A stretch of DNA of 64,000 nt from Paramoeba atlantica (Eukaryota > Protista > Discosea): the NCBI GenBank assembly GCA_977017575.1, contig CDRNVI010000054.1, forward strand, positions 496,001 through 560,000. The letters run 5' to 3'. The notes beneath the pieces were generated by a model. The model saw only the letters and a list, made by a program, of their open reading frames with translations. It made no database searches and had not been told where the DNA came from. Positions 1,068-61,691 of the stretch are shown one piece after another. The position numbers were made by a program, and so were the translations under genes. Position 1 is the stretch's first letter; each line of letters begins with the position of its first letter.

Positions 1068-1727
1068 ATGACTTCTTTGCAAATTTTTAGCGCGTCCGAT
1101 GTCCCTGTGCGACTCGGAAGAGTCAGCGCTGCTTCTCTCCCTGAAGAGCAGCTACTGGATCGATTTCTTCAAAACATTACCTCAAAATCATACAAGTGGA
1201 TTTCGGATGTCCCGGTATGTGAGTGGCCTAGTGTAACATGTTGGGAAAACGGAAAAGTCGCTCAGCTCTCCCTCGCATGGAAAACACTGCGCGGCACGCC
1301 ACAATGGGAATATCTCCCCGCTACAATGGAGCAGCTATATCTGCACGAAAATGAGCTCTTTGGGCATATTCCACTCGCATATCTGCCTCGAACGCTCCGC
1401 ATGGCATATTTATCGCACAACCGGTTTTCCGGGGAACTGAACTTAGAAGATTTACCGCGTGATATGCGGAAAGTCCGAGCCTCGACCAACTGGCTTAGTG
1501 GAACACTAGACTTCAGCTACCTTCCACGGTCAATGGTACACTTCGTGATTGCAGAAAACAATTTTACCGAAATTCTGCATTTCGAAGATCTCCCCCGCAG
1601 TCTTGAGTTACTCTACCTACAAGAGAACAACGACCTTCAAGGCTTTTATCGGAAAAATGATCTACCGCCGGGTCTCCTTTCAGAATGTTCTTTTCAATTT
1701 GGTGGAACTGCTATACAGTTATATTGA
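1068..1727 (+). CDS. LRR protein (CxW cap + plant-type LRRs)
   Basis: ATG ORF of 219 aa; RLGRV leader, PVCEWPSVTC cap, repeated LxxLxLxxNxF/LxGxL motifs. Confidence 0.85.
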   Translation: MTSLQIFSASDVPVRLGRVSAASLPEEQLLDRFLQNITSKSYKWISDVPVCEWPSVTCWENGKVAQLSLAWKTLRGTPQWEYLPATMEQLYLHENELFGHIPLAYLPRTLRMAYLSHNRFSGELNLEDLPRDMRKVRASTNWLSGTLDFSYLPRSMVHFVIAENNFTEILHFEDLPRSLELLYLQENNDLQGFYRKNDLPPGLLSECSFQFGGTAIQLY

Positions 1728-2756
1728 CGAGTGAGTTGTGTTTCTTTCATTATTCTTTTTTTAATATGGTAGGGTTGTTCATTACCGGGAAACACAATCG
1801 TTTTTGTCTTTTTTCTCATCGATTTACTTATTTTCGATTCATATCCATCTACTATTCACAAACACTTCTTTATACGTTAGTTATAAAATTTACTACTCAG
1901 AAACACATCCTGAATACGTTGGTTCAGGAAAAGTACAAGGAAAAGTACAAAAGGTGCACTTTTTTTCTATTTTTTTCTTTTATAAACTCTCTATGCGCAC
2001 ACTCTATGAGCACACTTCGAAGTCTCGGATCAGGTACGCTGTGCCTGGTTCGCGAAGCTCATTGATCATGATCGAACACAGATCAGACTTCTCCCGATTA
2101 ATACGTGAGACGGTGCAAAAAGCGTCTTGTGTCCACAGAAGTAATTCATTTCGGTAGGGGAAGGAGGTGCAAGTGGGTTCCATACCCACCGCTCTAGATC
2201 ATTACTGTGACGCCTTGCTCGAGAAGAAAAATTTGTTGACAGAGGATAGACTGAATCTTCAATATTGTCCGAATAATCATCTTCACTTTCTGGACAGTAA
2301 TCACTCAAGTCGTCTGAGAAAACCTCGCTCATTCCAAAGGAACTTGTAATAAGAAGGAAAAAGAAGTCAACAAGGTACATAAAATGTATCCTTATCGATT
2401 TTTTATCTTTCTTTTCTTTTTACTTCAATATTATCCTGCTTACTATTGACCCTTCACCCACCTCCTTAACCTTTTCTGCTTTCCGACGTTTTAGCCATCC
2501 TCCCTGTGATGCCTCACGGAGGGTGAAATTAACTTGTGGGGGGGGGGGGGGCAAGATCACGACCCATCTATCCGCACGTGCTTCGGACCGGATCTTTCGA
2601 CCTCTCCTCGGCTTGCCTTGTTACCCATCTCTTGTTGTACGAGAAGGCGCAGGATCGGGCCCGTGCCGACAGCGGCACATGTGCTTTCCCATTGAATTCG
2701 ACAAACAGGGTTGGCAGCTGTGGGGAACACAAAAATAAATCGGTTTCTACCTTTTT

Positions 2757-3641
2757 TTACACGGCCGGGAGGTGGTCTCTGACTTGTTCGAGGGCCAGTA
2801 GCCCTGCGAGCTTCAGTTGGACCTCCCCCATGGCAATAGGCCTGTAGGAGGAGTGGTGTCCCACCGGGGCCCCAGGCTTGTTGAAAAGCTTGAGGTTTGC
2901 TCCCGTGAGAAAATCCCTCATCGTGGGGGGGAGGGAGTTGGTTAGGATCCCTTGTATGATCCAATTGATCACGTCCCTCGGGTGTCCTCCTGCAGGATGG
3001 GACCTGGAGTTCCTTGGTCCATCCGGACGGGCCTGGCGCTCTAAGCGGCGCCAGGCTTGTGGCCTTCCGGTCAACATCTGGCGCCGACGGGAGTTCTATG
3101 GGTGTTCTTGTCATAGACCAGGAGAGAATCTCGGGCCTCGATGCCTCCGCCGTCCATCCGGGTAACTGGCGAAGGGTTTCGAGGAGAGGTTAGCTGGGGA
3201 GAAAGGAGCAAAAGAAACGGTTGACGATTTCCTCAGAATAGGAGCAGGGGCTTTCGCATGAGGAGTGCTAGCTTTCTTCCGGGAGCGGCTCAGAGAGGAG
3301 AGAGAGCGGGGGTCTACGGGTCACCGACCGGTGCCGAGAGGACCTGGCTGAAAAAGCAGAGAGAGGGGAGGGATCCGGGGAGTTTGAGTCTTCGCACGCG
3401 CACAAAGATCTTTTCTGTGCTGAGCACGTAGGGACATACACTCGTCATACAAGCATATATTGCGTTTGGCGGGCACAAAAAGGAGGCCACAAAAGTCACA
3501 AGCGCGGGACTTGATTGGGGTCTTAGCGCGGACTCCTGGGTCCGGCCTCCCCTTCTTCAGCGCCTCGATAGACAGCTGGTGTAGCCCCACAGCCTCGTCG
3601 GAGAATCTGGAAATCTCCACAGAGGATTTACGAGACACCAA
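2757..3641 (-). mobile_element. CRE-like non-LTR retrotransposon fragment (N-terminus and start of RT), frameshifted
   Basis: Motifs APGPSGWTKEL and YRPIAMGEVQLKLAG resemble the CRE-clade RT N-terminal region; Cys-containing ORF at 3321-3641. Confidence 0.65.
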
Positions 3642-4619
3642 GTATAAGTGGTGTAAGTAAGAACCGCAGAAAAACTTAGATCCGACGAATATTACAAAGG
3701 GTGCTGTGGACGAATTTCAACAGAGAATTAGTGGAAGCAAAATCTTCAATTGTTGTTCTTTTCAAAAAAAACTATTCCTTTATTCGTTTTTCAGAGCTAT
3801 CTGAAGTAGGTGACCATAAAATACAAAGATCGTACAAAAAAATCCCCAAACTTAAAAAAGAGTGTTCACTTTGGCACTTTCTTGAAAAACTTTAATTTCC
3901 GTGCTTACGCTTCTGGGGGTTGCCTTTTTCGCTTGATTCCTTTATAGGATACGCTTGCCGCAGGCTTCGTAGTAGCTTTGTTATTTGGCTAAACCGGGAA
4001 TCACCCGACTGGAAAGGGGGCGGCTAGGCTAGTAAAACAGCCTATGCGGGGTCGTCGTATGCGACCGTAGCATAGGTAGAAATTTACCTCTGCAGATCTA
4101 AATATGATTCTGTATTGAATAAACACATCGCTTCATCTGCGGTGTTGAAGCCAACGTGCGCGTACATCTGTATGCCCCTTTTTCTGAACAACCGTGATGC
4201 AGTCAATTGGACCACATGAACAGTAATAATAATAAAAGTAAAAATATTAATAATAGAAGCTTATTCAATAGTAAACTGAGCTTTTGCTTCTTGGTCAGCA
4301 GCTGAAACATTAGGGAGGAGCTTGCTGACTGGTGCAGTTTTCGGCGCACAATGTGCTACATGCACAGTGCCGCGGAAAACGTTTCCTTGCTTCGAATATT
4401 GTTTTGCACGGAACACAAGATATAACGCCGTCGACAAACAAATGAACGGTAACTCCTCGTAAGTGGTTTATTGCTTTACGGCGACGTCCGTATCAGAGTC
4501 ACCGGCTCGGATACCCGTTGCGAAGTCAAAATTTACAACCGGGCACACTTTTATGTCGTTTCTCGTGTCGGGCCGCTGGACGCCCGACTTGGCAAAGAAA
4601 GCAGCACCCGTCAATTTCT

Positions 4620-7600
4620 TTTGATATATTGCATCATACATATATATTGTATATTATATATTGTACAGGCTATTATATATTGTACAGGTAATCCTGCAGA
4701 GGAAATCCTGCAGATTTATGTGGTGAAAACGCGCACAAAACGCCTTTTAGTCACCTGTTTCTATCCAGCGTCACCAAGAACGTTCTCCTCCATCCAATTT
4801 TTGTCATTGCGGTTTTGATATACTATGAAGCTCCCTCTCAGAGCCTTCACGGTCATATTGCGCAGGCACTCAGCCACCAGCTCATCGTTACCCATAAATA
4901 GAGAGTTCAGAGTTCGACCAGCACTGCTTATTTTTCCTCTCGCTCCGACTTTGAAAACGAGTAGGAAAGTGCTCGGGTTTGTGAGCTTGCGGGAATGGTA
5001 GAGATTTGTGTACTTGGCAGTTTTTCTTTCGTGTGCGTAGACAAAAGTTTCCTCCCAGGGGCACGTCAATTCTATAATATACTCCTCCCCGTTGGACAGT
5101 TTCACCCACCCATCCGGTCGCAGCTCGGTGTCGAGTTCCGTGAGCCACGGAGGGGTAGAGCGAAAGTGAGGGAGGTCAAAGTGATATAGACTGGTCCCTT
5201 GGAATTTCTGCACAGAGTTTGCGAGGGCTTGTAGCACCATGTTATGTCGCAGAGTATATCGTCCTTGCTCGAGTGCTTTTCTACACCCGGAGAGTATATG
5301 TCGCGCGGTTTGCGTTTCAGTATCGCAAATGGGACACTTGTCGCTTGTGTGTGTCGATACGCCCCATTTGCGGAGAGACACTCTAGTGGGGAGTGGCGTT
5401 TCTGTTAGTACGGAAGCCGTAAATCGTGATAGCGATTCGCTTTTGAGATTACATAGGGCGGCAGCGAAGTCCCTCGCGAGGTCTGCTTCCGTCGCTACGC
5501 GGAACCATCTTCCCGCAACTGAAGTGCGTCTTTGCACGGCTTCCGAAAGATGCCTCTCATATTCACTGTCGAGAAGTCGTCGCACGTTATTGTGAGTTGA
5601 ACCGAGTATGCCAGTCGGCGGACGAATGTACCCCGCTTTTCTCTTGTTTTCTTCCTGATGCGTTCTCGCAGGGCGTGCTGGACATCGGGATCGCGTGATT
5701 TCTCCATTTGTTCCACGGCGCTCGCGGTTGAAAGAAGCCATAGTTTGGATAAGCTCACGAGGTTCCAACCATGCTCGGAGTACAACAGTTCGCTTGTCGC
5801 GGATTTTGCTACATTTAACCATTTTCTGATTTCATTTGTAGCGCATCGCTGGAGGCGCAGAACGTGGTTAAAAGTCAGACATGAATTGCCAACAAAAGAG
5901 TAGCGAAGGCGGGAGATAATACCATTATTGGATATCCAGAGTCGGGCGGGTAGGTCGTGGGCGCTGGAAGATATGTTGCGTAACCAAGTACGGAGTCGAT
6001 TGCGTAGCTTTAGGAACAGAATTTTACCATGCTGGGCACCAGGTGCGAGAGTCATACCCAGGAATGTGCTACCATTATCGCATATTTGAGGAATAGGTGT
6101 TGCGTCAATCATTATCTGCGGGCGTCTTGTCATGTAGCCTGAGGCTTGAGTCATTGCCATGTGTTAAATCCGACATTTCTTTGCGTTCAATTTCATTCCG
6201 ATGTCGCCTAGAACTTTGACCAGTACGTTCGTGGCAATTTGCATTTCCTTTGGTGTGTTCGTGAGTATACTGAGGTCGTCAGCAAAGGCCTTCAGAAAAG
6301 TTCCTTTCCATCCCAAGTGATTCCGTACTGTGGGCAACTTGAACGGATGAAGCGAAGAACCAATTCCATTGCCAAGTTGAATAAGATCGGCGACAGTGTA
6401 TCTCCTTGTAATACTCCACGGTCGGTCTCGATCGACTTCGTAAGGCCTTCAGCACACTTGATTTGACTAGATGCTCCTTTGTACAGCTCGCTGATATAGT
6501 TAATTAGAATTGGGGAGACACGGGCCCATTTTAGGGATTGTAACAGTACTGCGTGGGGGATAGATTCGAAAGCGTTCTTGATATCGAACTGTGCCAGTAA
6601 GTATTGCCGTTTGTGACGTCGTTGGTGTTCAAGGAGCTCGCATAAGACTTGTGTATGCTCGACGGTCCCATTCATGTGTGGTAGAAATCCTTTTTGTACT
6701 GATGTATCGAGCGCATGAGAATCCAAGGAATGTTGAAGGATTCGGTGGCTCAGGATTGAATGGAAAAGTTTCCCTATGCAACTAGTTAAGCTTATCGGTC
6801 GCCAATTCTCCATAGTTGATGTAGGACCTCCTTTGTGTATGAGGCGAGTTACGGCAGATTTCCAAGTGGGGGGGCAAATCCCGAATTTAAGGATATCATT
6901 GAATACTTGAGCGATGTAGACAAAGATAGGGCTACAACGCTTGAGCAGAGCGTTGGATACAGTGTCTGATCCAGGAGCAGCGCCCGAGCGCTTGGAAGAT
7001 ACAGCAGATGCTATCATTTCGGCGTCAATGTCCGACCATGGCATGTCGATGTCAGGCCGTGGTCCCAAGAACTCGGCGGGGGGTATGCTGTGATTCTCTT
7101 CAGGTTTTGACAATGATGCCGCGAAGTTCTCAACGTCTTGAAGAGGTACTGTAAGTTAAGACGTCTCGGGTTCCTGGATTGAGTCAGTGCGATCTAGGCA
7201 TTCGCCCGCAGCTGTCCACGGGTTTCTCTGGAACCGAGTTAATGCCCATCGTCGATCGATTTCCCTCTTTGTAGATTAGCTTCCTCCACGTACAACTTCA
7301 ACGCTTTCTCTGCTTCCTTAATTTCTCCTCGCTGCTTGTTTCTCGCGGCCCCTTCATGAAGGTAAGTGCACGTTTGAGTTGGCGAACATGTGTGCGAAGC
7401 CTCTTCGTGGTACGTTCGATGGCCAAGGGCCGTGAGTTCCTTCTGGCTCTGCCAGCTCTGGTTCGCAGGAGAAAGCCGTGTGTCGGGTCGCTCTCCCGTG
7501 CGGCTTCAAAGACGGTTACGGCGAGGATCGCGGATAATGTTTTAGCTTGAGTCAGGGCATCCTCATCGTTTCGCGCTGGGTGCACGTACAAATTGCAACG

Positions 7601-9090
7601 TTCCTCAATTTTCGCAATAATATTGCCCCACTGTTCCTCTGTAAAACGTACCAGAACTCGTCCTCCCGTTATTGTGTCAAATGTTTCGAGAAGATTCTGC
7701 AGGTCAGGAATGGGATGAATGGTTGGGGCTGGGGCGTGCTGGGCTCGAGGGATTCTCTGCAGTATCGTGCGTCTGCGATTTACTTCTGGTGGGGGAGGTA
7801 AAGGTAAAGGCAAAGGCGCGGGTTCTGCTACGGATTCCATACGTGGTACAGAAGGTGAGGAATCCGGTTGCGTCTCGTGGGCTGGTGGGAAATGTCGTAG
7901 AGGGCTGGACAGTGGACTCGTGCGGGGCAGGGAGTTGGTGCGAACTGGTAGGCGGGGTGCCACGACTGGGGCGGGCGGTTCCGAAGCTTGTGAAGAAGCT
8001 GCAGCGCGTTCGGCATCACCAAGCGCAGGGAATAGAATATTTTTTCTCCGTCCAGCTTATGGCAGAGTATGCGATTTCGCCAGCTTTGAGGAGAACTCCA
8101 ACATGAATGCTTACATTTGGTTTTGTCTTTACATTTATGTGCGCAATTACGGCGAGGGACTGATTCAGGTGGGATATTGCCATCTCTACTAACATGAGGT
8201 TCCGGGGAAGTGCGTGTAGGAGAGAGTTCGTGGTTTACAGCCTGCGTACCGCTCAAGTTTCCTGTCTCGGATGGCCAGCTAGGGTGATTCTGTGGTGATA
8301 TTATGCTAGCATCAGCAGGAAATGTCCTCGTAAACAAATTCCTGAGTGATCATGTTCGATTCTGACTGTTTTCTTCGATGATCATGACCCCTGTCTTGCA
8401 ACATTGGTGTTTGCACTGAGTTTTATTGCTGCATATGTGCCGACACGGGCGATAGTTGGCCGTGTTTGCTGATATTACGGCGGACGACGGCGGATTACCG
8501 GTTGGCAGTTCCTCATACTGGGCCTCTTCGCTCGGTATGGCATCTGTCGAGACTTGCGGATCGGTTTCTATCGATGTGGCTACTGTCGGACTATGTGACC
8601 GTGTTAGTGGTGACTCCCCGAGGTGCCGTTCTGGTCGAGGATTATTTGTAGCACCCGTGATGAGGACTCCTATTTTGCAGCACTGGTGCAAACAATTTGT
8701 CTTGTCGCGGCACGTATGCTTACAGGGCCTTCTGCCGGGAGCTTGTAAACTGTCTATAGCCACGACTTCCGAAGAGGGAAGAGGGACGCTAGGATGCACA
8801 GACCTTTCGGTTTCACTTTGCAACATACGTGAAGGCACACTTTGCACATGTACTTCTTCCTTACTCATCGTACACCTCCTCATACACCTCATAAACCTCC
8901 AGTGTATGAGAGGTTTCGTGAGTCCACCCCGTGAAAAGAGGCGTTTCGTCTTCGCTAGAGTCCCTGTCGTCGGTGCGGTACCCGGATAGCATGATATATC
9001 GTCATCTGGATCCCAGTCCGGATCATCACCCTCTGAGCCCGTGGTAATGTCTACAGTATCAAACTTTTCGTGTTCTCTAAAAGTTTGTTA
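4620..9090 (-). mobile_element. HERO-type RT+RLE non-LTR retrotransposon, family A, disrupted copy
   Basis: ORF pieces 8350-8892, 7828-8337, 7298-7963, 6292-7113 (RT: WRPISL, QFDIKNAF, GVLQGDTLSP), 5495-6160 and 4761-5822 (CPIC..H..C, RPDG..IIELTCPWEE). Collinear with 38064-42749. AT-rich tail near 4640-4690. Confidence 0.92.
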
Positions 9091-37985: not shown

Positions 37986-38024
37986 AGATAGCGTCTTATA
38001 AAGATACAGTTTCTTAACTTGTTG
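37986..38024 (+). other. Spliced-leader-like 39-mer at the retroelement 5' junction
   Basis: AGATAGCGTCTTATAAAGATACAGTTTCTTAACTTGTTG, compared with the kinetoplastid SL pattern ..ACAGTTTCTGTACT..TTG; 39 nt upstream of the element ATG. Confidence 0.5.
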
Positions 38025-38063
38025 AATTATTTTCAATTTTGTACTAACTTTATCTTCCGAAGC

Positions 38064-49560: not shown

Positions 49561-50296
49561 ATTGTAGAAAAGATAAACTATACTGTCACCCCCCTTTAAT
49601 ACGCACACGTTTTTGAGGTTTCTGCATATTAAGGGGGGAAGGCATAAGAAGGGGAAGAACCCCCTTCCAGTAAATAAATCTGCTGCCTCTTCGGAGAATT
49701 CAAATTCGGAAGTGTCATCGATTTTGCCAGGCACTATTGGAATTTGTTTGATGACTTGGATTTTTGTGTACAGCACCCCATACTTCGGCAACGGGATATC
49801 ACCTTTCTCGTAGGACACTATAATAGTGTCCTAATTTAATAGCCTATTAAATTAGGATTGCCCTCATGACCATTACTTGCTTTTGGACTGCGTCGCCACA
49901 CCTGCAAGAAAAGCTGTAACTGTTTCCTTTGGATTGTTATCCACGACTTTGGGCTGCGGGCAACCAATAGGAGGAATAGTGTAGCCTTGAACTTCTCCAT
50001 TGACAAACATCGCAGTTTCCTCACCGAAGAAAGCGAAGCGATTACACGCTGAGATATTCGAAAATCTGCTTCACTGATCGCGAGGTACTGCATTCGACCC
50101 CATCTCCGCCACACACATCCATAGTGTTTTTTTTGAAGCGTTGATAGGTGTCTCCTAAAGTAGATATAAGTTTAGAAGATCATCTTGTTTTATGTCGGAT
50201 CAAATCGAGCACCATCGACTTCGTCAGTGGGCACGACAATGCAGAGGCTTGCTCACAATCACAAGATCACAAATCACAGGATCTTAATGCGCCTAA

Positions 50297-50386
50297 AACA
50301 TACTGCTCTGTGAGAGCTCTCCGGTGCGGCACTATTTTGCAAACTTGGACAACTTTTAGACCCACACATTTAGACCCACACCCCTG
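50297..50386. repeat. Tc1-like terminal repeat
   Basis: CTCTGTGAGAGCTCTCC..TTGGACAACTTTTAGACCC..CACCCCTG. Confidence 0.55.
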
Positions 50387-50798
50387 CATGTCTCTTTGCG
50401 TTTTCAAAAAAATCTTAGCAACATTCGTCCTTGGGCGAATAATTTTCCTTCTTTGCGGCAAGTTTGCGGGTTCAGAGGTAGGTTTCAGAGGAAATATTAT
50501 TCCGACTATAACATATTCAATACGTTAGTATAGTCGTTTCCTAGAACCGATGATTTACTTCGTTTAGCCAAATAGACACACTTGTAACTTTCTTGAAAAG
50601 GACAAACTTGTATTACCAAAAGACCTAGACAGATTGCAAAGACTCAAACTTTAATATGTAGATAGAGAAAATGAACTTGTCTGCTTTTTAATCGATCGAA
50701 TGGAAGTTTTTAAATGATGACTTGTTATGACCATATCATTCGTACAATACACGTAAGGAATTATCTGTCAACATTCACAAATTTTCAGCTCCTTCGAA

Positions 50799-51575
50799 AT
50801 GAACACAACAACCCAATCTCGAGTTGGCAAAGTAAGCAAAGCGAGCTTCCCCCATGAATATCATTTAAGCCGATTAGTCGAAAAAGTTGAAAATCGGTTA
50901 TCTAGCTGGGCTGAGTCCAATCAGGCACGCTACTGGAGTGGCATTGGATCTGTGCCTCCTAATAAAGTCAACTCAATTCGTTGGGATCACCGCGATCTAC
51001 GCGGCACCTTAAACTGGGCATTTCTTCCTCCTACGACCACTCAATTCGATGTAACGAATAATGCGCTCTCTGGTACGGTCTCGTTTGAACAAATTCCCTC
51101 TACGCTTCAGTCACTGAATCTGAGTGAAAATAAATTTTCAGGTGTCCTCATGTTTGAGCACCTTCCTCCTGGGCTTGTGACGTTAGACCTGCGAGAGAAT
51201 AAGTTTGAAGGTGAAATAGAGATGAGCACATTGCCACGTAGTTTGTGTCAACTAATTTTGACGAGGAATTACTTTATCGGTCCTGTCGATTTGGCATCCA
51301 TGCCGCGTGGAATGCTTGATCTTCTCTTAAATAGCAACGCTTTCTTGGGTACGCCTGATTTGGGAAACCTTCCTACAAATCTGCGTCACCTTCGACTTGA
51401 TGAAAATCAGTTTTCTGGCGTGCTCCAATTTAACTTCCTCCCTCCGTCGTTGCGTATACTAACGCTACAATACAACCATGACCTCGGAGGAACCATTGAA
51501 AAGGGTAACATGGCTGCAATTCCAACCCAGTTCGTGTACGACAATACAAAAATTGTTTGCAAGTCGTATTTTTAG
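50799..51575 (+). CDS. LRR protein
   Basis: 258 aa; RVGKV leader and about 7 LRRs; the Cys cap is absent. Confidence 0.87.
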   Translation: MNTTTQSRVGKVSKASFPHEYHLSRLVEKVENRLSSWAESNQARYWSGIGSVPPNKVNSIRWDHRDLRGTLNWAFLPPTTTQFDVTNNALSGTVSFEQIPSTLQSLNLSENKFSGVLMFEHLPPGLVTLDLRENKFEGEIEMSTLPRSLCQLILTRNYFIGPVDLASMPRGMLDLLLNSNAFLGTPDLGNLPTNLRHLRLDENQFSGVLQFNFLPPSLRILTLQYNHDLGGTIEKGNMAAIPTQFVYDNTKIVCKSYF

Positions 51576-52448
51576 ACTACAATGAAAGCTGTACTGTAAG
51601 ATACGATTAAACCATTCCAAAAAAGGTCAATTTTTCGGTCTAAAGGGACTTTTTTCCCCAAAAAACTTTTAGCTTCGTACTTCACTTAATAAAATATACC
51701 AAACAAGAAAATGTATTAGCTCTATCTTGGTTCTGAGCCTGGACAATAATTTCGAATTCCTTAAACAGCGGATTACAAGAACTCTTTAATTCACATCGTA
51801 CGGTACAGGCTTCTATCATCACGTCATCCAAGGTTCCCAACTACAAAAAGTGATACTGTCATACATTTTACAGCCTGTGCAAAGAAAAAACATAGAGAGG
51901 AGTCGTGTACGTAACAAAAATACGATGCTTAATCACTCGTTTGGATAATACTGAAATTTTGTTTGAGAAACCACCGAGAAAAAAATTCAAGTTTTTTTCT
52001 GGGGAAAAAAGTCCCCTTTCACCAATTTTTCTTCAAAGGTCAATATTCCCCCCCACCCCCCCTTCCAGGAAGAGAGACTTGGCTATTTTGATCCAAAACC
52101 TGTTCTCTTCCTATCAGGTGATCTAAATTAGTATAAAGGATCTAGACCTTTCTGTGGTATTTTATAGTATTCCACATTCCAAGATTTGTTCCTCTACCCT
52201 CGCGTCGAATTCGACTAATTCTGTTACGCGTATGATCCCCGTTTCCTCAGGTCACTTTAGAGGTTTATTTCTCCATGTACGAACAACACTGTTTCATATA
52301 TATAATATTTAGGGCGTAACTGTTTATTTACGCCCATGTTTTGTCGAAAAAAATGGTCATTTTTTGCGTCGCAATCCATCAAAGATTTCAAATTTACGTT
52401 CCTTTCGAAATTACTATTTTCCTTTTAAATAACCTCATTCTTTCCCTC

Positions 52449-53079
52449 ATGGCCCTTCGTACGAAGCGCTGACGTTTCCCAAAGTCGTCTTGGCCGCGTT
52501 AGTGCCGCCCTACCTCAGGAATACACCCTCGTTGAGTTTTTGAAAAACATTCGGTCCGAACCTGTCGCGAACTTCAACACACTTTGGACCCCTGCGTGCC
52601 AGTGGTACGAAGTCGAATGTGACGAGCACGGAATAGTGGTCGGGGTCTTCTGGTCTTGTTTTGGACACAAAGCTTTCGCCCAGGCATTCACACTCCGTGG
52701 TATTCCGCGATGGGAGCATCTCCCCGGGACGCTCATCTCCTTGCTTTTGTACAACAACGCACCTGAGGGCACGGTGCCCTTCCAAAGCCTTCCTGCAGGT
52801 TTACTCCAGCTGGAACTCTCGACGAACTGGTTTTTCGGCATACTCGATTTCTCCACCTTACCGCGGGACCTCAGGGCGGTGGGGCTCTCACATAACCAGT
52901 TTAACAAAGCGGTTCGGTTTGAGTCGCTGCCGCCAGGGTTAGAACAACTGAACCTGGGTTCGAACCCCCGATTGTGCGGCGTGTACGCCTCAAGGCATCT
53001 CCCCGCCTCGCTGGTCGGGGGTCAATTCTCCGTTGAACACACACAGATTACCCAACAAGGTCGGTGTTGTGTAATGTAG
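52449..53079 (+). pseudogene. LRR-CaaX gene with a +1 frameshift right after the ATG
   Basis: ATGGCCCTTCGTACGA: removing one C gives MAFVRSADVSQSRLGRV, in frame with ORF 52540-53079, which ends GRCCVM. Confidence 0.75.
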
Positions 53080-53995
53080 TTAAATAGCACAGTGAAATTC
53101 ACACAAATGGTTTTTCGAATCCCTGCAACGTCATCAAGGTTAATCTATCTTTACAGCTGAATGACGCAACGTAAACCCCCTCCCCGTTTAATATACGTAA
53201 AGGGGGGGTTCGTCTATTATTAACAACCATATATTATTAACAATGGTATGTGGAGTTACATGTTGAGCTTTTCCTTTCACACTGACCATGTGTTGAACCT
53301 CTTTTGCTTCCGGATTTACATCATAATTTGCTTCAAGTCTTCGTTGTTCCACAGATAATTCTGCAAACACATGGACTTTTTACTACTGGAGAACGGTAAA
53401 ATCATTTTGTCTCTCTAGCGTGGAAAATTGGGTGATTTCATTAGAACTTTTACAACCACTGCCTTTGGATTACGCTCCCTCTTCATTCATCGAATGGACA
53501 GATCCAGAGTTCGAAGGACTAGAATCTCTTTTACCCTCCCGGTGAATTCCAAGAAAAAAATCTAATCCGCATTGCACCACCAGTTGAAGATTTAACCTCG
53601 TCCAAGGAAGTATTTTTCTTATGTTTGGAAGCTAAATGCATTGAACGCCTTCTTGAATCTACTTCAATATCACGGGGCATATCACATGGCGTTGCACTGT
53701 GCTTGGAAACATTCATGGCCACTTTTAGCTAAAAGTGATCCTGTTGAAGGAGCGGGATCGGAGGATGTACTACTTTTCTGATTTTTCGAAGACAAATGCC
53801 GTGATAGCCTTCTTGAATCTACCGAAACACCGCACACGTGAAGTGTATAAAATCTCCTTTGACTAAGAAACAGCTGACACCACTTTTGGAAATAATACGT
53901 TTCAGACGTCGAGCTTTCAATCGAAGCATAATCAAAATTAAGATGTTGGTATTGAACTGAACTATTGGTATAAAACTAAACTATAAAACTAAACT

Positions 53996-54067
53996 TTCGG
54001 CGGGCGTAGTTGGCAGACAGTGGGCCTTGCAACCTGCAGGTTGGGGGTTCGATTCCCGCTGTCGACA
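53996..54067 (+). tRNA. Degenerate tRNA-like sequence (pseudogene or SINE head); identity unclear (loop CCTTGCAA)
   Basis: Acceptor TTCGGCG/TGTCGAC, A-box-like GGCGTAGTTGG, anticodon stem GTGGG/CCTGC with an 8-nt loop, T-arm GGGGG-TTCGATT-CCCGC; several mismatches. Confidence 0.5.
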
Positions 54068-54775
54068 AAACTTGCAACCTGGCGGCCTCAATACGAAGGG
54101 AAGGCGATCAGGAGTGCCTTCAAGGCCCACATCCAAACCCCGCTCCCCTGGAGGACCGACTCGGAACCGCCAAGCTGAACCAGGCTCTAGCGCAGCCGCT
54201 GAATTTTCGAGCTGCTTACGCAAAAAATGTAGCCTCGAAAACGGTCTTATAAATTTTTTCCCCAATTACAGTTGCCCGTCCTCTACGCAGTATATTTATC
54301 ATACGGAGAATCTGCAGAGCTTTATTAAAGGGAGTACCAGAAAATGTTTTCTTTATCCGCGCACACAACTCGTTTAATTCTTTTTAAGCAACGTTTGAAT
54401 TAGGGTCATGCACCCAGTTTATATCATCGCGGTGTTGAAAAATTATGAAACTTCCTAGCAGCGCGCTTTGAATCATACTTTGCCGGGCATGCCTCTAAGA
54501 GGCTGTTATTCACCTCAACAAGAGAGTTCAGGGCCCGAGCTGAGCTGTGGAACCAAAACTATGTTATTATTGATATCATACATGCCACCTACCCCCAGAT
54601 TGGATATTGATAATCTTTTGTTGGTTTATTTTTTTGATCATTTGTTTATGGATGATCATTTGGCAATTTTTCTATTTTAGTCTCTTCGTTTTATTGTAAA
54701 ATAAAGTGGATTCGCAAAAAAAACTTTCTTTTGCTTCGTTACACTTTCTTGTCTCCCCCAAGATAGTTGGGAACG

Positions 54776-55606
54776 ATGTTGAGTCCTTTTTTATGTTTCA
54801 CGATCGACCCTTCACCCGTACTTCCTAGCAAAGTCCGGGGCGCCCACCTTCCCCAGGAATACGCACTTGCGCGTCTTATACAGGACATTGAACCCCCTCA
54901 CGCCTCGTGGAGCACATCTACTCCGGCCTGTGAGTGGAAAGGTGTGTCTTGCGACAAGCAGAAACGAATTACTAAACTTCACTGGTATAGCGGTGCCACA
55001 AAACTAATATCAAGGGTAGAGATGGAACAGCGATTCCTAGGGTCCCTTCGGTGGGTTTGGATACCTGAAAGTCTTTTGTTTTGTAGTGTCGCGTACAATC
55101 GTTTGAGTGGGACTGTACCAACGGATGCGCTTCCTCCTCGCCTCACGTACTTGTTTCTGAACCAGAACAAGTTTACAGGAGAATTAGACTTGGCGCATTT
55201 GCCACAAGGACTAAAAGAACTGAACGTTTCGAACAATTTTTTTGAAGGTACACCTGACATGACTAGACTGCCTCATAGCTTGCTGCAGTTGGATATTTCT
55301 ACGAATCTTCTCTCGGGTAATGTTGAACTTAAGTTCTTACCGCAGACGATGAAAATTATCAAGTTATCGGCCAATAAATTTACAGGACCCCTTTCCTTGC
55401 AACACTTGCCGCCCTGCCTTACGGTGCTCTCCCTCGGTGAAAATGCATTTGCCGGCCCCTTGCTGCTTCGTAATCTTCCTCAGGGATTGAGCATGCTCGA
55501 TGTCTCTTGTAACACCGAACTGACGGGCCATTTCGTGCGCTCTGAGTTACCCGGGTCGCTATGGACGTTCAGTATTTGGAATACTGAAATAGAAGTAAAA
55601 TTTTAA
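54776..55606 (+). CDS. LRR protein
   Basis: ATG 54776; PSKVRG, TPACEWKGVSC, about 7 LRRs. Confidence 0.87.
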   Translation: MLSPFLCFTIDPSPVLPSKVRGAHLPQEYALARLIQDIEPPHASWSTSTPACEWKGVSCDKQKRITKLHWYSGATKLISRVEMEQRFLGSLRWVWIPESLLFCSVAYNRLSGTVPTDALPPRLTYLFLNQNKFTGELDLAHLPQGLKELNVSNNFFEGTPDMTRLPHSLLQLDISTNLLSGNVELKFLPQTMKIIKLSANKFTGPLSLQHLPPCLTVLSLGENAFAGPLLLRNLPQGLSMLDVSCNTELTGHFVRSELPGSLWTFSIWNTEIEVKF

Positions 55607-56737
55607 TAGCACCTAGATTACCGCATAGGAGAGTCGGTAAAACTGCTTTTCTGAAAGTCGGATGCGGGCTCGTGTGACCTCCAGTTACTGCCAAGATTCC
55701 GGGTACTGATGACAGTTACAGGGAAAGCCACTATTCTGAGAATTGTTAGTTGAACGTTGACACAATAATCTGTTTTGCTCATAGTTTCTGTACCTTAATA
55801 CATTTTACTGGCTCATCTTTTTTCTCCCGGAAACGGGCATACTTTTACTATTTTAATGCCCGCTTCCGGATGGCGTTAGGGAGGGAACTGTCCCTCTTGT
55901 TATAAAGTAGTGGTGCGCCTCCCTTCCATCATCTCCCACCACCCCGATCGGAACACGGTTCCGAGTCCCCATGCGCTGAGGGATCCTTCTACGGGAGCAC
56001 GCCGCCTGCCTTCCCACTAACGCGACACCGGTGCTGCGCGCATGAGGCTTTTTCCATATACCGGAAGTCTCTCACACGGCGAGTAAACACAGTATACAGT
56101 ATGTGTGTTCTAGAGGATGTTCTATGCACCTCTCTTGCTCACCAGGCGTGGCGGATTCTGTGGGACCCTGATGCCCATGATGCATCATGAACCATGACTC
56201 CATTAGCCAGAATGCATCCATGGCCCTGACTATGTTGTATCATGAACCATTGAAGTCATCAATATTTAAATATTTTATGTACATTCCATCATTCTTTGAT
56301 CATCTTTCCAGTGTTATCAACCACTACTTACCAAGAATATACCAAGAACGGATTTACTGGAAGCGTGCGTTAGTAATTCGAATGTACTTATATGTTATAT
56401 GTGAATTAAGTTATAGTGGAAACTATATTATTAGAGGAACATATGCAAAACGAAAACAATTTGGGCGGGACGTGCGACGCGAAACTTTGGATATCCCAGT
56501 CCTAAGTTATAGGATGTGTGGAGGCAGGGGGGTGAAAAGATATGCTGAGTAAATAGGGGTCCAATGTTTCGATATGGATTTGTTATGAGGGTTGAGGAAT
56601 GCACGGGTGTTATTAAATAGGTAACATTATATAGATTGAGTAAACATGTTTTCTATATACTGTTACATTACATGAGAATTACAAAAGAAATAGATTACGT
56701 ACAACGCAAGTGTATTCTTGAGTTTTTGGTTCTTTTC

Positions 56738-57355
56738 ATGTCATTCTACTCCACGGCTTCTACGCGCGCATCTGACGAAACAACTCTTTCCGGTTCTCGG
56801 ACAGGAAAGGTCAAAGGGAATGCCTTACCCTTAGAGTATGACTTGGTGAGATTCATAGACAATGTTGAAAATCAGCACAACTCGTGGAATACGCACACTC
56901 CAGCGTGTGAGTGGGAGGGTAACAATTGTGAGGAAGACGGCACCTTATGGCGTCTCTTTTGGTGTGTGCGTAAGTTACGTGGTACACCCACTTGGGAGTA
57001 TGTGCCGACAACCTTAACTCAACTCCTGATGCGTGCGAACAATCTTTCTGGTGAACTCCCGCTTGAGCTTTTTCCCTCCCCTTTGCGAGTAGTTTTGCTT
57101 AATCAAAACAATTTTAGTGGAGAGCTTAATTTTCTACACCTACCAACTTCAATTCAAGTTCTAGACTTAGACTACAACGAATTCGAAAACATTATCCATT
57201 TTTTCTCACTTCCTCAGTCACTACGTAGTGTGGGGCTAGCGAACAATCCTGAGTTACGGGGAACGTTGGATGCGGAATCGTTATCGAAGTCCATGCGCTA
57301 CAATGTTGAATCCACACGCATCATTGTAAAGAATGGTCCGATGATTCGCGAGTAA
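56738..57355 (+). CDS. LRR protein
   Basis: ATG 56738; RTGKV, TPACEWEGNNC, LRRs. Confidence 0.83.
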   Translation: MSFYSTASTRASDETTLSGSRTGKVKGNALPLEYDLVRFIDNVENQHNSWNTHTPACEWEGNNCEEDGTLWRLFWCVRKLRGTPTWEYVPTTLTQLLMRANNLSGELPLELFPSPLRVVLLNQNNFSGELNFLHLPTSIQVLDLDYNEFENIIHFFSLPQSLRSVGLANNPELRGTLDAESLSKSMRYNVESTRIIVKNGPMIRE

Positions 57356-57819
57356 TCGTAATAACATAACATCGGTTACGACGAATACTGTTTATTATAA
57401 ACAGTACAAAGCACCGGTATAAATTATACCGGTGCTTTGTTCGTTTTTTGGATATGTAGTATCTTCGATGATTTCGGTCATCGAACGGTTCATGTCATTG
57501 AACGGTTTTACAGGTGATTTCGAAAAATTAAAATTCAAACAAAAAATTGAAAATACTAACATCAAACTATTTTCTCGGCCAGTGTACCACAACTGACTTC
57601 AGAAGACTGTATCGGGAGGAGGAGGAACAAGGCAAAATGCAGAAACGTTTTTGAGGATGACGATTTCCTTGTATGAAATGCTAGGATCTGCTTCGGAAGT
57701 ACGGGAGTGAGAGGAGGCGATCCGGTAGAGTATGTTTTTGCTGGTTGCACGCATGCAACGTGAATACCGCAGCCAGTTCATCAAGCTTGCCGTGGTCCAT
57801 CGGACTATGCGGGTTCCTC

Positions 57820-58139
57820 TCCTCGATTCCAGATCACGTAGCTTCCGAAGATCGCACTTCGCATTATTTGTTGTAGACAAGATGATGTGGCTTCTTCATC
57901 CCCGTCGAATTGTGGACGAGTTGAGATGCCGTTGTGTTGGGCATTCCTCTCGCACCAATCTCAAATGCGATAGAGTGACATGGGTCATTGTCCGGGCGAT
58001 GCTTGTATAACAGTTCGTTGCGCTTACCGCTTTTACGATGATGATCCCCCATAAGGTTCTCCTCCCACGGTGCGGTAAGCTCTATAATATGCTGACAAAC
58101 ATTTCTTAGTTTAACCTAGCCGTCGGGTCGCAATAATGA
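57820..58139 (-). mobile_element. HERO family-B-like 3' RLE fragment, truncated by the TIR element
   Basis: Minus frame SLLRPDG*VKL..IIELTAPWEEN..RKSGKR..FEIGARGMP, then GSYVIWNR after a frameshift. Confidence 0.8.
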
Positions 58140-59892
58140 GGGAGTTGCTATGCCCTGTCCATGGTATCATGTTCAGGGGAACAGCAACTCCCCATTACCT
58201 CGGCGTAGTAAACACGCCTTGGCTTGCCTGGCACTACGATTGCCGAAAAAAATATATTTTCGGTTCATTTCGCAGCCCAGTCGCTTCCCACTTAAGGGGC
58301 CCGCTCCCACAACCGAGTAATCTCCCCGGCAGCACGGTTTTACTCATGCGTCGAGAAGGCTGGGGTGTGAGACCAGGGTGCATTTATAGAAAATTTTCGG
58401 AAGAAGAAATACGAAGGAAATTTTACTGCATAATGGAGTAGAAAACTTTGAGTGCAATAGAACAAAGGGTTGGCGTAAACCTTTGGTTAACGTTTTTTCT
58501 TTTGGGGGGGATTTACTTTCTTTGCCATTCCTCATGCTATCCACTCATAAATTTTACTAATTACTCTAGATTCGTGTGTTTGTTTCCTCCAGTTACGCTT
58601 TCTATAATTCTTACATAGGGTCTACATGTACATCGCCAGTTCTTAGAGCTGAGTTCAGGAGTGCTTCTTTTATGTCATAATTATGCCCTTCTCGAGTCAA
58701 CCCGTCTGCTGGGTTTTCTTTAGATTTAATATGGAAAATTCGAAAAGAATGTCCATGTTTCCCTATCTGTTCATCCATTTCCGTGATCTCATTACACATC
58801 GATCTCCTAACTGATGTACGCCCCGATTCTGATGGTATTTCACTCTGGTGAAACCAGTGTCGCATATCAGCGGATAAAAAGTTTACGTTGGGGAAATTCT
58901 CTATTACATGGATAATTTCAGCGATAGCTGGAAAATTCAAGCAAGGAGGGCGATTGCACATCTCATTTAGTGGTGTTCCATCCGCAATACTTCTTGACAA
59001 TTCCTCCCCTTTTGATGCCTCAAAGTAACGTAAATATAAACGTGATGATGATCGAGAGTCGTGTGCCACACGTAGCACCCCGCATTCCACGAGTTCTAAT
59101 AAATGTTGTAACCAAACCCCGGAGGATAGTTTCCTTATTTTCCCGTGAAAAGGGGGACAATTTATCCATTCAATAAAATTTTGGGTACTTTTCAATGCCG
59201 TGCAACATTTGATACCCCATGGTAAACCATGTTTTAGGTGTGTTGATGTAAAGAATCCAAGTTGTTCCTTCAGCATTTATGAATCTTCGTTAACAAAGAA
59301 ATCGGGTATAAATGCATCAAGCAAAGCAACCGTTTGCTTTTTTTTTCTAGTTTTCTTTTTTTTTCTCCACCGAATAACACTAACGCGTTCACTATCGTCG
59401 GTCTGAATTTCTGATTCAATATTCCTACTAGGCGAGATATCCTGAAAAGCCGTATTCCGAGCGTCAACCCGAGACGTCCGGTGTGTGCCTCGATACTTCC
59501 GTATGGGGGGATCTATAACGCACCAACAATACTCCCCCCCTTTGTTTTCTCTCCCCCGAACACTCCATATTTTTCAACTTCATATTCGTATTTCGAGCGT
59601 CAACCAGAGACGTCCGGTGTGCCTCGATACTTCCATATGGGGGGATCTATAACGCACCAACAATAGTCCCCCCCTTTGTTTTCTCTCCCCCGAACACTCC
59701 ATATTTTTCAACTTCAAATCTTCTTAGGGGGGAGGACTCCCGTTACCATGCCTCAAGTGAGGATTAAGGAACTAAGTTTTTTTTTTCGGCAATCGTAGTG
59801 CCAGGCAAGCCAAGGCGTGTTTACTACGCCGAGATAATGGGGAGTTGCTGTTCCCCTGAACATGATACCATGGACAGGGCATAGCAACCCCC
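58140..59892 (-). mobile_element. 113-bp-TIR element carrying a deleted LTR/DIRS-type RT-RNase H
   Basis: TIRs at 58140-58252 and 59780-59892 (2 mismatches). ORF 58611-59276 has YFEASK..SRSIADG..LNEMC..PP..FP..ADMRHWFHQ (RT N-half) joined to FHIKSKENPADGLTR (RNase H C-terminal motif). Confidence 0.75.
59451..59716. repeat. Tandem duplication, 2 x ~133 bp, inside the TIR element
   Basis: CGTATT.CGAGCGTCAACC.GAGACGTCCGG...CCATATTTTTCAACTTCA at 59451 and 59587. Confidence 0.9.
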
Positions 59893-59904
59893 TCATTATC
59901 ACTC

Positions 59905-59937
59905 CTTCGTAAGCACCATGTTACCGGGACCAAGCCC
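59905..59937 (+). ncRNA. Degenerate 5' half of a twister ribozyme
   Basis: CTTCG TAA GCAC C ATGTTA CCGG GACCAAGC CC aligns with the complete twister and shares its TCATTATCACTCCTTCGTAA leader; the 3' core is missing. Confidence 0.5.
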
Positions 59938-60050
59938 TAGGTGCCAGGCATGCCATACCACGTCACAACTCCCCACCCTCTCCCTTCTGTTTTTATTCTG
60001 TTTTCACTTTATTGTAAAAAAACATGCCGGAGAGGAGGGTGTATAACGCA

Positions 60051-60785
60051 AATGCAACGGCAAGTGAGCCCCGAAGGACACGGAACCCATGGGCCTCCCA
60101 GCACGAATGCTGGGGCGGTGGTACCCCGAAGGGTACGGAGCCCATGGGCCTCGTTACAGAGGAATAAATGCAACGGCAAGTGTGTCCCGAAGGACACGGA
60201 GCCCATGGGCCTCCCAGCACGAATGTTGGGGCGGTGGTACCCCGAAGAGTACGGAGCCCATGGGCCTCGTTACAGAGGATGAATATATAAATGCAACGGC
60301 AAGTGTGTCCCGAAGGACACGGAGCCCATGGGCCTCCCAACACGAATGCTGGGGCGGTGGTACCCCGAAGGGTACGGAGCCCATGGGCCTCGTTACAGAG
60401 GATGAATATATAAATGCAACGGCAAGTGTGTCCCGAAGGACACGGAGCCCATGGGCCTCCCAGCACGAATACTGGGGCGGTGGTACCCCGAAGGGTGCGG
60501 AGCCCATGGGCCTCGTTACAGAGGATGAATATAAATTATATTTATAAATGCAACGGCAAGTGTGTCCCGAAGGACACGGAGCCCATGGGCCTCCCAGCAC
60601 GAATGCTGGGGCGGTGGTACCCCGAAGGGTGCGGAGCCCATGGGCCTCGTTACAGAGGATGAATATATAAATGCAACGGCAAGTGTGCCCCGAAGGACAC
60701 GGAGCCCATGGGCCTCCCAGCACGAATGCTGGGGCGGTGATACCCGAAGGGTACGGAGCCCATGGGCCTCGTTACAGAGGATGAA
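60051..60785 (-). repeat. Tandem array of 6 units (116-134 bp, mostly 123), each with three UUCG-loop hairpins
   Basis: Units start at 60051, 60167, 60290, 60413, 60547 and 60670 (AATGCAACGGCAAG). Minus strand carries GTACCC-TTCG-GGGTAC, CCCAGCA-TTCG-TGCTGGG and GTGTCC-TTCG-GGACAC; GCCCATGGGC palindrome twice per unit. Confidence 0.95.
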
Positions 60786-60943
60786 GTACTGCCAGGCCGG
60801 GACCAAGCGAATTGATGCGTGACATTTTCAGGCGTGTAAGATTGTTTAGGTAAATGGAGCTAAATGTAGTAGTTCTACTGGATACTAGAAACAAGTAGTT
60901 CAATTATATTTAGTTTATAATCGTGCTATAGATGTATTGAAAT

Positions 60944-61012
60944 CTTCACCCTCACACTCCGCCGAATATGGCGGTGCCGGGCTTGGGACCGGTAACAAGC
61001 GTGTTTACGAAG
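60944..61012 (-). ncRNA. Twister ribozyme, P1-type with P5
   Basis: Minus-strand RNA: CUUCG UAA ACAC GC UUGUUA CCGG UCCCAAGC CCGG CA CCGCC AUAUUC GGCGG A GUGU GAGGG UGAAG. Helices P1, P2, P4, P5 and pseudoknots T1 (CCC/GGG) and T2 (GC/GC) can all form. Confidence 0.82.
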
Positions 61013-61691
61013 GAGTGATAATGAAGTATCACTCGATATCCCGCGCCCTTCACTGCGTCCCCACGGAAGGCGAAGAGGTCCAGCAGGGAGCGTTGATTGT
61101 GCCTACCCCTGCTGGCCCTAAATATCTCTGGCGGTCTTGCCCTGCATGACAAAACTACTATCAGAACAAGGTGTTGAACTTTGACAGATCCTCTTTTGGG
61201 TCAAATATGAATTCTCATTTCAAAAACAAGATTAACTGGGTTGAACTCCAACGCTTCACCCCTCACTTCAGTTGACTTCGTCCTATTTCTAGTTATCCTG
61301 ACCTCCAGTGACTTCCAGCGACTGTCACCATCGCCAGCGACTGTCAGCGACCTCCAACTACTGTCTACATAATCTCCATAGATACTAAGTAAATAATATT
61401 TATAATGTGAAGAATAGAAGATTTATAATGAGGAGAACCATCGCTAGTACATTAAGCCTGCAAGTTTGTAGTACATTAAGGTTGTACTGTAAGTACTGTG
61501 CTGTAAGTACTTTACTGTACATTAAGGCTATACTGTAAGTTGAATAAGCTGAATGAGAGATTTGCTAAGATGGATTTACTACCCTAGGGCATTGATCTAC
61601 ACCTGGGGCATTATGGGGTACTACATTGCACAGCTAATTTACAAAGTTGTAACTTAAATTTCGAATTGGACAGCCCTACTCACCATCGGGA

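Follow-up and report, generated by a model that had tools for sequence, protein, structure and literature searches.

Twister ribozymes are widespread, but to our knowledge the only ones with a demonstrated biological role are variant twisters of a single flatworm LINE. L1Tc of Trypanosoma cruzi is likewise grouped with the retroelements that are processed by self-cleaving RNA.

The closest experimentally supported precedent for the locus described here is the twister variant of Perere-3, an RTE-clade non-LTR retrotransposon of Schistosoma mansoni, the 5′ end of which is processed by twister T-variants (PMC8501958). Perere-3 resembles the element reported here in that a retrotransposon begins with a twister-type ribozyme, is transcribed together with the RNA upstream of it, and has its 5′ end defined by cleavage; in our case both the co-transcription and the cleavage are predicted. 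The HDV-like ribozymes of R2 and the hammerheads of Penelope-like elements and retrozymes are also self-cleaving RNAs that process retroelement transcripts made from host promoters (PMC8501958), although they represent another ribozyme class and another retroelement class, and none of them stores a second, internal copy of the part that is cut away. A ribozyme-processed retrotransposon is already known as a kind, and the motif described below is set in a mobile element and is not a host antisense ribozyme.

Another group of described systems is formed by the tyrosine-recombinase retrotransposons, including elements of the DIRS-1 type (PMC6681497) and the kinetoplastid elements VIPER and TATE (PMC6681497, PMC12278014). 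The word "ribozyme" is absent from the first of these papers and occurs only 2 times in the second, a mobilome paper. No paper that joins a twister with DIRS-type or other tyrosine-recombinase elements was found in the searchable literature, and none on twisters in kinetoplastids or Euglenozoa, which supports an earlier note on this DNA in its remark that it knew of no twisters described from kinetoplastids.

The window (the whole 64,000-nt stretch of DNA that was analysed) carries a twister-class motif that is probably the first module of a family of tyrosine-recombinase (DIRS-like) retrotransposons, the window copy probably being a non-autonomous member that has lost internal sequence and is inserted in the orientation opposite to an array of LRR genes. 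A canonical twister would be a fixed, selected module of a whole recombinase-retrotransposon family in a protist. Moreover, the predicted cut lies inside the element, and the piece that would be lost is stored again downstream.

Anatomy and class of the motif

All coordinates are positions in the window, and both the element and the motif are read on the minus strand, the motif from 61012 to 60944. Every block that the earlier note had listed for these 69 nt was found again when the sequence of 60944-61012 (minus) was re-read, from P1 and UAA through P2, GC, P4 with its loop and P5 to GAGGG:

61012-61008, minus strand: 5′ strand of P1, CUUCG, by sequence reading
61007-61005, minus strand: UAA, by sequence reading
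61004-61001, minus strand: 5′ strand of P2, ACAC, by sequence reading
61000-60999, minus strand: GC after P2, followed by a 6-nt linker, UUGUUA
60992-60989 / 60988-60981 / 60980-60977, minus strand: P4 CCGG / loop UCCCAAGC / CCGG, followed by CA
60974-60959, minus strand: P5 hairpin, CCGCC-AUAUUC-GGCGG, an optional stem of the twister class, followed by A
60957-60954, minus strand: P2′, GUGU, by sequence reading
60953-60949, minus strand: GAGGG, in which the first G, G60953, is the putative catalytic G
60948-60944, minus strand: P1′, UGAAG, by sequence reading

The nested pairs are standard throughout (5/5 in P1, 4/4 in P2, 4/4 in P4 and 5/5 in P5, or 18/18), as are those of the two pseudoknots, T1 between L4 and L1 (CCC:GGG, 3/3) and T2 between L4 and L2 (GC:GC, 2/2). 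Counted together, nested and pseudoknot pairs are standard in 23/23 cases. The T1 and T2 complementarity is retained in all intact copies of the motif, and the three-dimensional pseudoknot is predicted. The bond predicted to be cut is U61007/A61006, by homology with dU6-A7, the cleavage site in the crystallised O. sativa twister (PMC6154101); the earlier note had placed cleavage at this same U/A step.

Across the whole window, no Rfam model matched at its gathering threshold. In E-value mode on a 79-nt slice, however, the Rfam twister-P1 model (RF03160) aligned over its full length (model positions 1-68 of 68) with 28.2 bits (E 8.5e-5), a sub-threshold score, since the gathering score of RF03160 is 67.2 bits. 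The covariance-model check that had been proposed for the motif was, in this respect, only half borne out, by a full-length match below the threshold and not by one at the gathering score. In the alignment, UAA, GC, CGGUCCCAAGCCCG and GAGGG are all matched, and the L4 loop UCCCAAGC lies within CGG...CCG. The sole departure from the consensus is GCU for GCC, the third letter after P2 being U and not C. The model's P3 hairpin is deleted and a 14-nt insertion accommodates P5, and the low score is due to these two differences. Annotated twisters have P3 in 78% of cases and P5 in 1% (PMC6154101), and the motif is accordingly a rare architecture of the twister class and not a different fold. It follows that the Rfam twister-P1 threshold misses members that lack P3 and have P5. 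A Twister-P5 match on a 251-nt slice (22.5 bits) was rejected as mis-registered; the P1 model appeared only on the tight 79-nt slice.

Compared with type-P1 twisters in general (RF03160, clan CL00120; O. sativa Osa-1-4, PDB 4OJI), the motif has the common block order P1-UAA-P2-GC-P4(UCCCAAGC)-P2′-GAGGG-P1′, and both pseudoknots and the U-A cleavage site are likewise predicted for it. It differs in lacking P3, in having P5, in reading GCU for GCC after P2, and in having CA-P5-A in place of the UAAA strand between P4 and P2′. By its anatomy the motif is a twister, scoring below the Rfam threshold and with catalysis predicted, and the evidence supports a complete twister-class motif of type P1 with P5 and without P3. 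The claim of completeness in the earlier note is upheld by the full-length alignment to the P1 model, in which all conserved single-stranded blocks are matched, and by the retention of the motif, with compensatory changes, in the relatives considered below. It is also reasonable to regard it as probably active, cleavage being a prediction from sequence.

The element and its relatives

The motif belongs to a bounded element, in which it is set back by 17-18 nt from the 5′ end. The parts of the element are as follows:

58133-61024, minus strand: the whole element, a ~2.9-kb non-autonomous tyrosine-recombinase-type retroelement of subfamily A, bounded by the ICR (internal complementary region) arms and the ends of sister-copy similarity
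61007-61024, minus strand: the leader that the predicted cut would remove, (U)CAUUAUCACUCCUUCG plus U61007, 17-18 nt, conserved in copies with unrelated flanks
60050-60785, minus strand: a tandem array of 6 x 123 bp, each unit giving UUCG-capped hairpins on the element strand
59780-59937, minus strand: the ICR, an inverted copy of the joined ends, from an inverted-repeat search and alignment
58611-59276, minus strand: a 221-aa ORF, the N-terminal part of an RT, from exhaustive protein search and the same ORF in sister copies
58133-58252, minus strand: the 3′-terminal 120 nt, ending ...AACUCCCUCA(UU), complementary to the ICR and conserved in three sister copies (L001-L003)

The ends of the element are also the points at which L001-L003 stop matching the window, and contigs of other copies break off at 61012/61023. 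The last 5 nt of the leader before the UAA block (61012-61008) are the 5′ strand of P1. The hairpin array lies between the twister and the ICR, and a 134-bp duplication and the 221-aa ORF lie downstream of the ICR. Compared with subfamily B, its 3′-terminal region is identical at 96/112 positions. The sequence that immediately precedes the element (window 61035-61190) is itself repeated in the genome, and several contigs from three runs begin matching at 61035 and end at 61129 or 61187, so that the insertion was probably into another repeat.

The 123-bp unit of the hairpin array reaches a summed word depth of ~50,000-60,000 in run X4, where most of the remaining stretch has tens to hundreds. 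It is hugely over-represented in the DNA contigs and must therefore exist far beyond the element family or in huge arrays. A word search for further copies with the ORF of the hairpin array gave 1 match. Five sequencing runs were used, four of them DNA-type contig sets and one a doubtful RNA set. The RNA set gave a single 45-nt match, in the hairpin array, and no match on the twister. It is conceivable that the window copy, which is antisense to its neighbours, is never transcribed.

The 221-aa ORF has no Pfam match and no match in a PDB sequence search. Exhaustive protein search found 170 relatives, of which the long ones (500-700 aa) match only query residues ~15-150, and most of the long relatives that were scanned have weak RVT_1, RVT_3 or RT_RNaseH_2 Pfam matches. 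When the ORF was compared with the 690-aa RT/RNase H ORF that a recombinase element from a metagenome carries, similarity was confined to residues 79-152 and stopped right after motif A, DMRHWFHQ. Because the match ends just there, the ORF is taken to be an RT N-terminus whose core has been deleted, and by eye it appears to be fused to a short RNase H-like tail (..KENPADGLTR). The window element also lacks a Gag-like ORF and a tyrosine-recombinase ORF. Without a recombinase, it is a non-autonomous derivative; without the Gag-like ORF, the recombinase and most of the RT, it could move only in trans. In fact, the same 221-aa ORF was found at the three loci L001-L003 in ENA assembly ERZ24900291, so this deletion derivative was amplified after the deletion, that is, mobilised in trans. 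The window copy is antisense to its neighbours and has none of the enzymes. Even with a competent motif, it is doubtful that this copy is active today.

Full-length relatives were reached in ERZ24900291 by way of the protein matches. They are 7.0-7.3 kb long, begin with the same twister, and encode a Gag-like protein, a tyrosine recombinase and RT/RNase H. The representative locus is:

L010, full-length, 7256 bp: twister at 6416-6488, ICR at 7900-8063, 3′ end at 13658
L010, ORFs: 347-aa Gag-like, 293-aa recombinase, 480-aa RT

In L010, an unrelated 78-bp array occupies the same position between twister and ICR. The layout of L007 (~7.0 kb) and of L013, which is interrupted by another element, is the same as that of L010. 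The recombinase ORFs of L006, L007, L010 and L013 share ALRSCE..HTLRH and a C-terminal HY, and one recombinase ORF has a weak Phage_int_SAM_4 match.

A custom covariance model built from six twister heads recovered nine heads from the loci retrieved, each of them on the 5′ side of such an element. They fall into four subfamilies:

Subfamily A: window, L001, L002
Subfamily B: L007, L010, L013
Subfamily C: L009, L011, both decayed
Subfamily D: L012, 3′ part lost

L006, L008 and L009 have no intact twister head, being truncated or decayed. No twister was detectable in L004 and L005, two distant recombinase elements from metagenomes, and on this account the association between twister and recombinase element may be lineage-restricted. 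L005 (metagenome contig SXGS01590882.1) is at 1118-5726 an apparently intact recombinase retroelement with ORFs of 405, 298 and 690 aa. None of these has a Pfam match, and RT motifs (LPMGWSHSP, YDN) and recombinase motifs are visible in them by eye; Pfam seems to be blind to this clade.

The leader and the internal complementary region

The inverted-repeat search found 59780-59899 to be complementary to 58133-58252 (pair I1, 120 nt at 98%). Immediately beyond, 59893-59937 is complementary to 61024-60979, which comprises the nucleotides upstream of the cut and the first half of the twister; the pairs that involve the 5′ end are I2 (24 nt at 96%) and I5 (19 nt at 89%), and in the ICR the stretches paired with the two ends are contiguous. 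The ICR, ~1.1 kb downstream, thus mirrors the 3′-terminal 120 nt followed by the first ~45 nt, which comprise the leader and the twister's 5′ half. On the plus strand, the block reads as the 3′ end followed by the 5′ end of the minus-strand element, as in an ICR of the DIRS type, and the circle-junction sequence that it holds is ...CCCUCAUUAUCAC.... In the window copy, the leader as held in the ICR is identical over 20 nt and is joined directly to the 3′ end. The ICR layout is the same in L007, L010 and L013, and an equivalent ICR in L003 scored 22 bits with the custom covariance model.

The leader, (C)AUUAUCAC..., is present and conserved in copies with unrelated flanks, and integrated DNA therefore contains what the ribozyme would remove. 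Folding with longer context gives alternative pairings between the leader and GAGGGUGAAG.

The 3′ half of the twister (P5, P2′, GAGGG and P1′) has no copy in the ICR. The ICR's copy of the other half carries fixed differences that are common to subfamilies A and B: G replaces A at +3, and GA replaces UC in the loop. The head alone is kept as a twister, and the ICR copy is not. A second ribozyme at 59893-59937 was considered and rejected, since this is where the ICR copy lies, in which the loop reads GGGACCAAGCCCUAGG and the 3′ half is missing. The loop copy in the ICR always reads CCGGGACCAAGC and not the exact complement of the head (window 59924-59935; ICRs of L002, L003, L007, L010 and L013), and the hexamer GGUCCC thus occurs in sense orientation on the element strand at both head and ICR. 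A second copy of this ICR-loop 12-mer is found at 60797-60808, beyond the hairpin array. Array-less variants seem to exist, to judge by one contig in which 59911 is joined to 60753. At position 5503 of L007, A replaces the U that is 5′ of the predicted scissile bond, and the ICR of L007 itself keeps U; this is a post-insertion change that separates the head from its stored copy.

Several likenesses to the DIRS-1 type are evident, including an ICR complementary to the joined ends and, in full-length members, a tyrosine recombinase with RT/RNase H (PMC6681497). No fixed-length target duplication was seen in copies of the window family. What the element ends do share is 2-7 nt of variable length (CA, CATT, TCATTAT) in four copies. 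Unlike DIRS-1, the family has no long inverted terminal repeats, the only inverted pairs that involve the ends in the window element and its relatives being those with the ICR. Its ICR lies in the 5′ leader region, upstream of the Gag-like ORF, and the missing 5′ end would come from the ribozyme and not from promoter position. With VIPER and TATE the family shares the gene order Gag-like, recombinase, RT/RH and the setting of a protist with a spliced-leader-like sequence. Those elements have split direct repeats (A1 ... B1-A2-B2), whereas a search for split direct repeats of the Ngaro/VIPER type found none here, the only direct repeats being the internal tandem arrays, which stand beside the ICR. 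Because it has neither long terminal inverted repeats nor split direct repeats, the layout is neither classical DIRS-1 nor VIPER/TATE.

The spliced-leader (SL)-like sequence (..CAGUUUCUGUACCUUGUUG) occurs in the window, in L007 and in L013, and we take it to resemble the kinetoplastid spliced leader. A kinetoplastid spliced-leader pattern had no match within 2 mismatches when the window was scanned. The copies at L013 (6338-6352 and 18421-18447) and L007 (5461-5490 and 12437-12460) lie inside SL-like sequence, which reads ..GAUAAAGAUA, then CA, then GUUUCUGUACCUUGUUG.. across the insertion; these two copies within SL-like sequence are subfamily-B members. The same SL-like sequence heads another retroelement in the window (~37990-38025). 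There may be a target preference for SL-derived DNA, or the insertions may have been into SL-headed retrocopies.

Transcript processing and rival explanations

The arrangement of leader, twister and ICR lends itself to a model of the element's life cycle. The element has no evident promoter and would be transcribed within longer host transcripts. The twister would then fold co-transcriptionally and, by homology to characterised twisters, cut between U61007 and A61006. Such a cut would free the element RNA from the upstream host RNA and would at the same time remove the element's own first 17-18 nt. The shortened RNA would presumably be reverse-transcribed, and the ICR, if the DIRS-1 model can be transferred, could serve as the splint or template for rebuilding the lost end and closing a circular cDNA. 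Finally, a recombinase supplied in trans by full-length relatives would integrate the circle at sites that share 2-7 nt with the junction. Put briefly, the retrotransposon would use a canonical twister to remove its own leader, and the inverted circle-junction copy to rebuild it. With a 5′ end that repairs itself in this way, a recombinase element that has no promoter could free itself from the long polycistrons of a protist with a spliced leader. We hold this reading tentatively, with confidence a little short of an even chance.

In Perere-3, it is the target-site duplication that provides the 5′ strand of P1, and the first nucleotide of the copy is the one next to the cut, whereas in the window family the P1 strand and the 12-nt leader are the element's own and are mirrored in the ICR. 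Perere-3 needs no spare copy of the upstream strand (PMC8501958). Furthermore, Perere-3 is an APE/TPRT element with a variant core, and the window family is recombinase-based with a canonical core. The self-repair model is testable both for how promoter-less elements obtain defined RNA ends in genomes that are transcribed as long polycistrons and for how DIRS-type elements regenerate their termini. If it is true, a canonical twister would for the first time have a function in a recombinase retroelement, and the splint model long proposed for DIRS elements could be approached directly.

Another way in which the motif could act is to cleave for a purpose other than end definition and ICR repair. 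Cleavage would yield an uncapped 5′-OH RNA whose translation or stability is aided by the folded twister, and the uncleaved fraction, which keeps the leader, would be the template for the RT. The presence of the leader in all integrated copies would be explained equally well by uncleaved templates. This explanation does not account for an ICR that holds the junction with exactly the leader, nor for the defined 5′ end of a read-through RNA beside unrelated flanks, and we consider it unlikely.

A third possibility is that the conserved sequence is a signal for nucleic-acid recognition or pairing, such as a terminal inverted repeat formed with the ICR and bound by the recombinase or the RT, and that twister catalysis is irrelevant or has been lost. 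The inversion of the motif's 5′ half in the ICR (pairs I2 and I5) would fit such a signal. So would the core helices, as helices that never vary are expected of a protein or DNA site too.

Conservation between subfamilies nevertheless speaks for selection on the twister as an RNA structure. P2, P4, T1 and T2 are invariant in intact copies, and P1 has one-sided changes. Between the window and L010, which represent subfamilies A and B, the motif without P5 is identical at 50/53 positions. Similarity over the next 100 nt is at the level of shuffled sequence, and the RT remnant in the window has 48% identity with the nearest subfamily-B RT ORF.

The behaviour of P5 is of a different kind. It differs by subfamily (CCGCC/GGCGG, UCGUCUU/AAGACGA, UCGUCG/CGACGA and UUCUCGUG/CACGGGAA) and always pairs. 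In 5/5 cases the P5 pairs are changed on both sides, and 100% of cells are paired against 32-46% in slid controls, these pair counts being drawn from few, related sequences in an alignment fitted by the covariance model. Pairing that is kept through double changes is the signature of an RNA helix and speaks against a recognition signal. The covariation is confined to P5, and the invariant core is neutral on the fold but strong evidence for constraint. Two more points tell against a recognition signal: the 3′ half of the motif is as conserved as the 5′ half and yet has no counterpart in the ICR, and the ICR copies in both subfamilies have the fixed UC to GA change, which destroys the loop that the head keeps. 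Overall, we regard a recognition signal without catalysis as improbable.

The window copy agrees with the subfamily-A consensus wherever L001 or L002 differs, and its twister looks intact for that reason. Core mutations are found in the sister copies L001, L002, L009, L011 and L012, so many copies are dead.

The motif might also be a ribozyme that stands alone or has been domesticated by the host and that controls transcripts antisense to the LRR genes, in keeping with its strand, which is opposite to that of the flanking LRR ORFs. The earlier note had described it as antisense to a gene cluster, and this holds insofar as LRR genes lie on the plus strand on both sides of the element, but the motif itself belongs to an inserted retrotransposon as its 5′ module. 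It lies 17-18 nt inside a bounded mobile element with other copies in unrelated places, and nothing links it to the LRR genes, which makes a host function very improbable indeed. Last, chance resemblance to the twister consensus, on the side of which stand the sub-threshold Rfam score and an MFE folding z-score of just -1.06 (uninformative alone), can in effect be dismissed, because the 16-mer CCGGUCCCAAGCCCGG around the loop occurs 1 time in the window where 0.01 would be expected even with 2 mismatches allowed, the whole descriptor would arise by chance ~9e-9 times per window (a simple analytic estimate, taken as the product of fixed letters, pairing odds and positional freedom), and the motif recurs at the homologous position in diverged elements.

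Two minor observations concern the L001 locus. A second, divergent twister-like stretch at 7180-7274 (minus strand) scored 13.9 bits with the custom model; it has a P1 of UCCUU/AAGGA, UAA, CCGG-UCCAAAGC-CCGG and a P5-like CCCAC/GUGGG, with GAUGG for GAGGG, and could either be what is left of a head from another family or match in part by chance. At 3930-4186, a few kb from the sister copy, there are two tandem 5S rRNA genes (98.7 and 53.1 bits).
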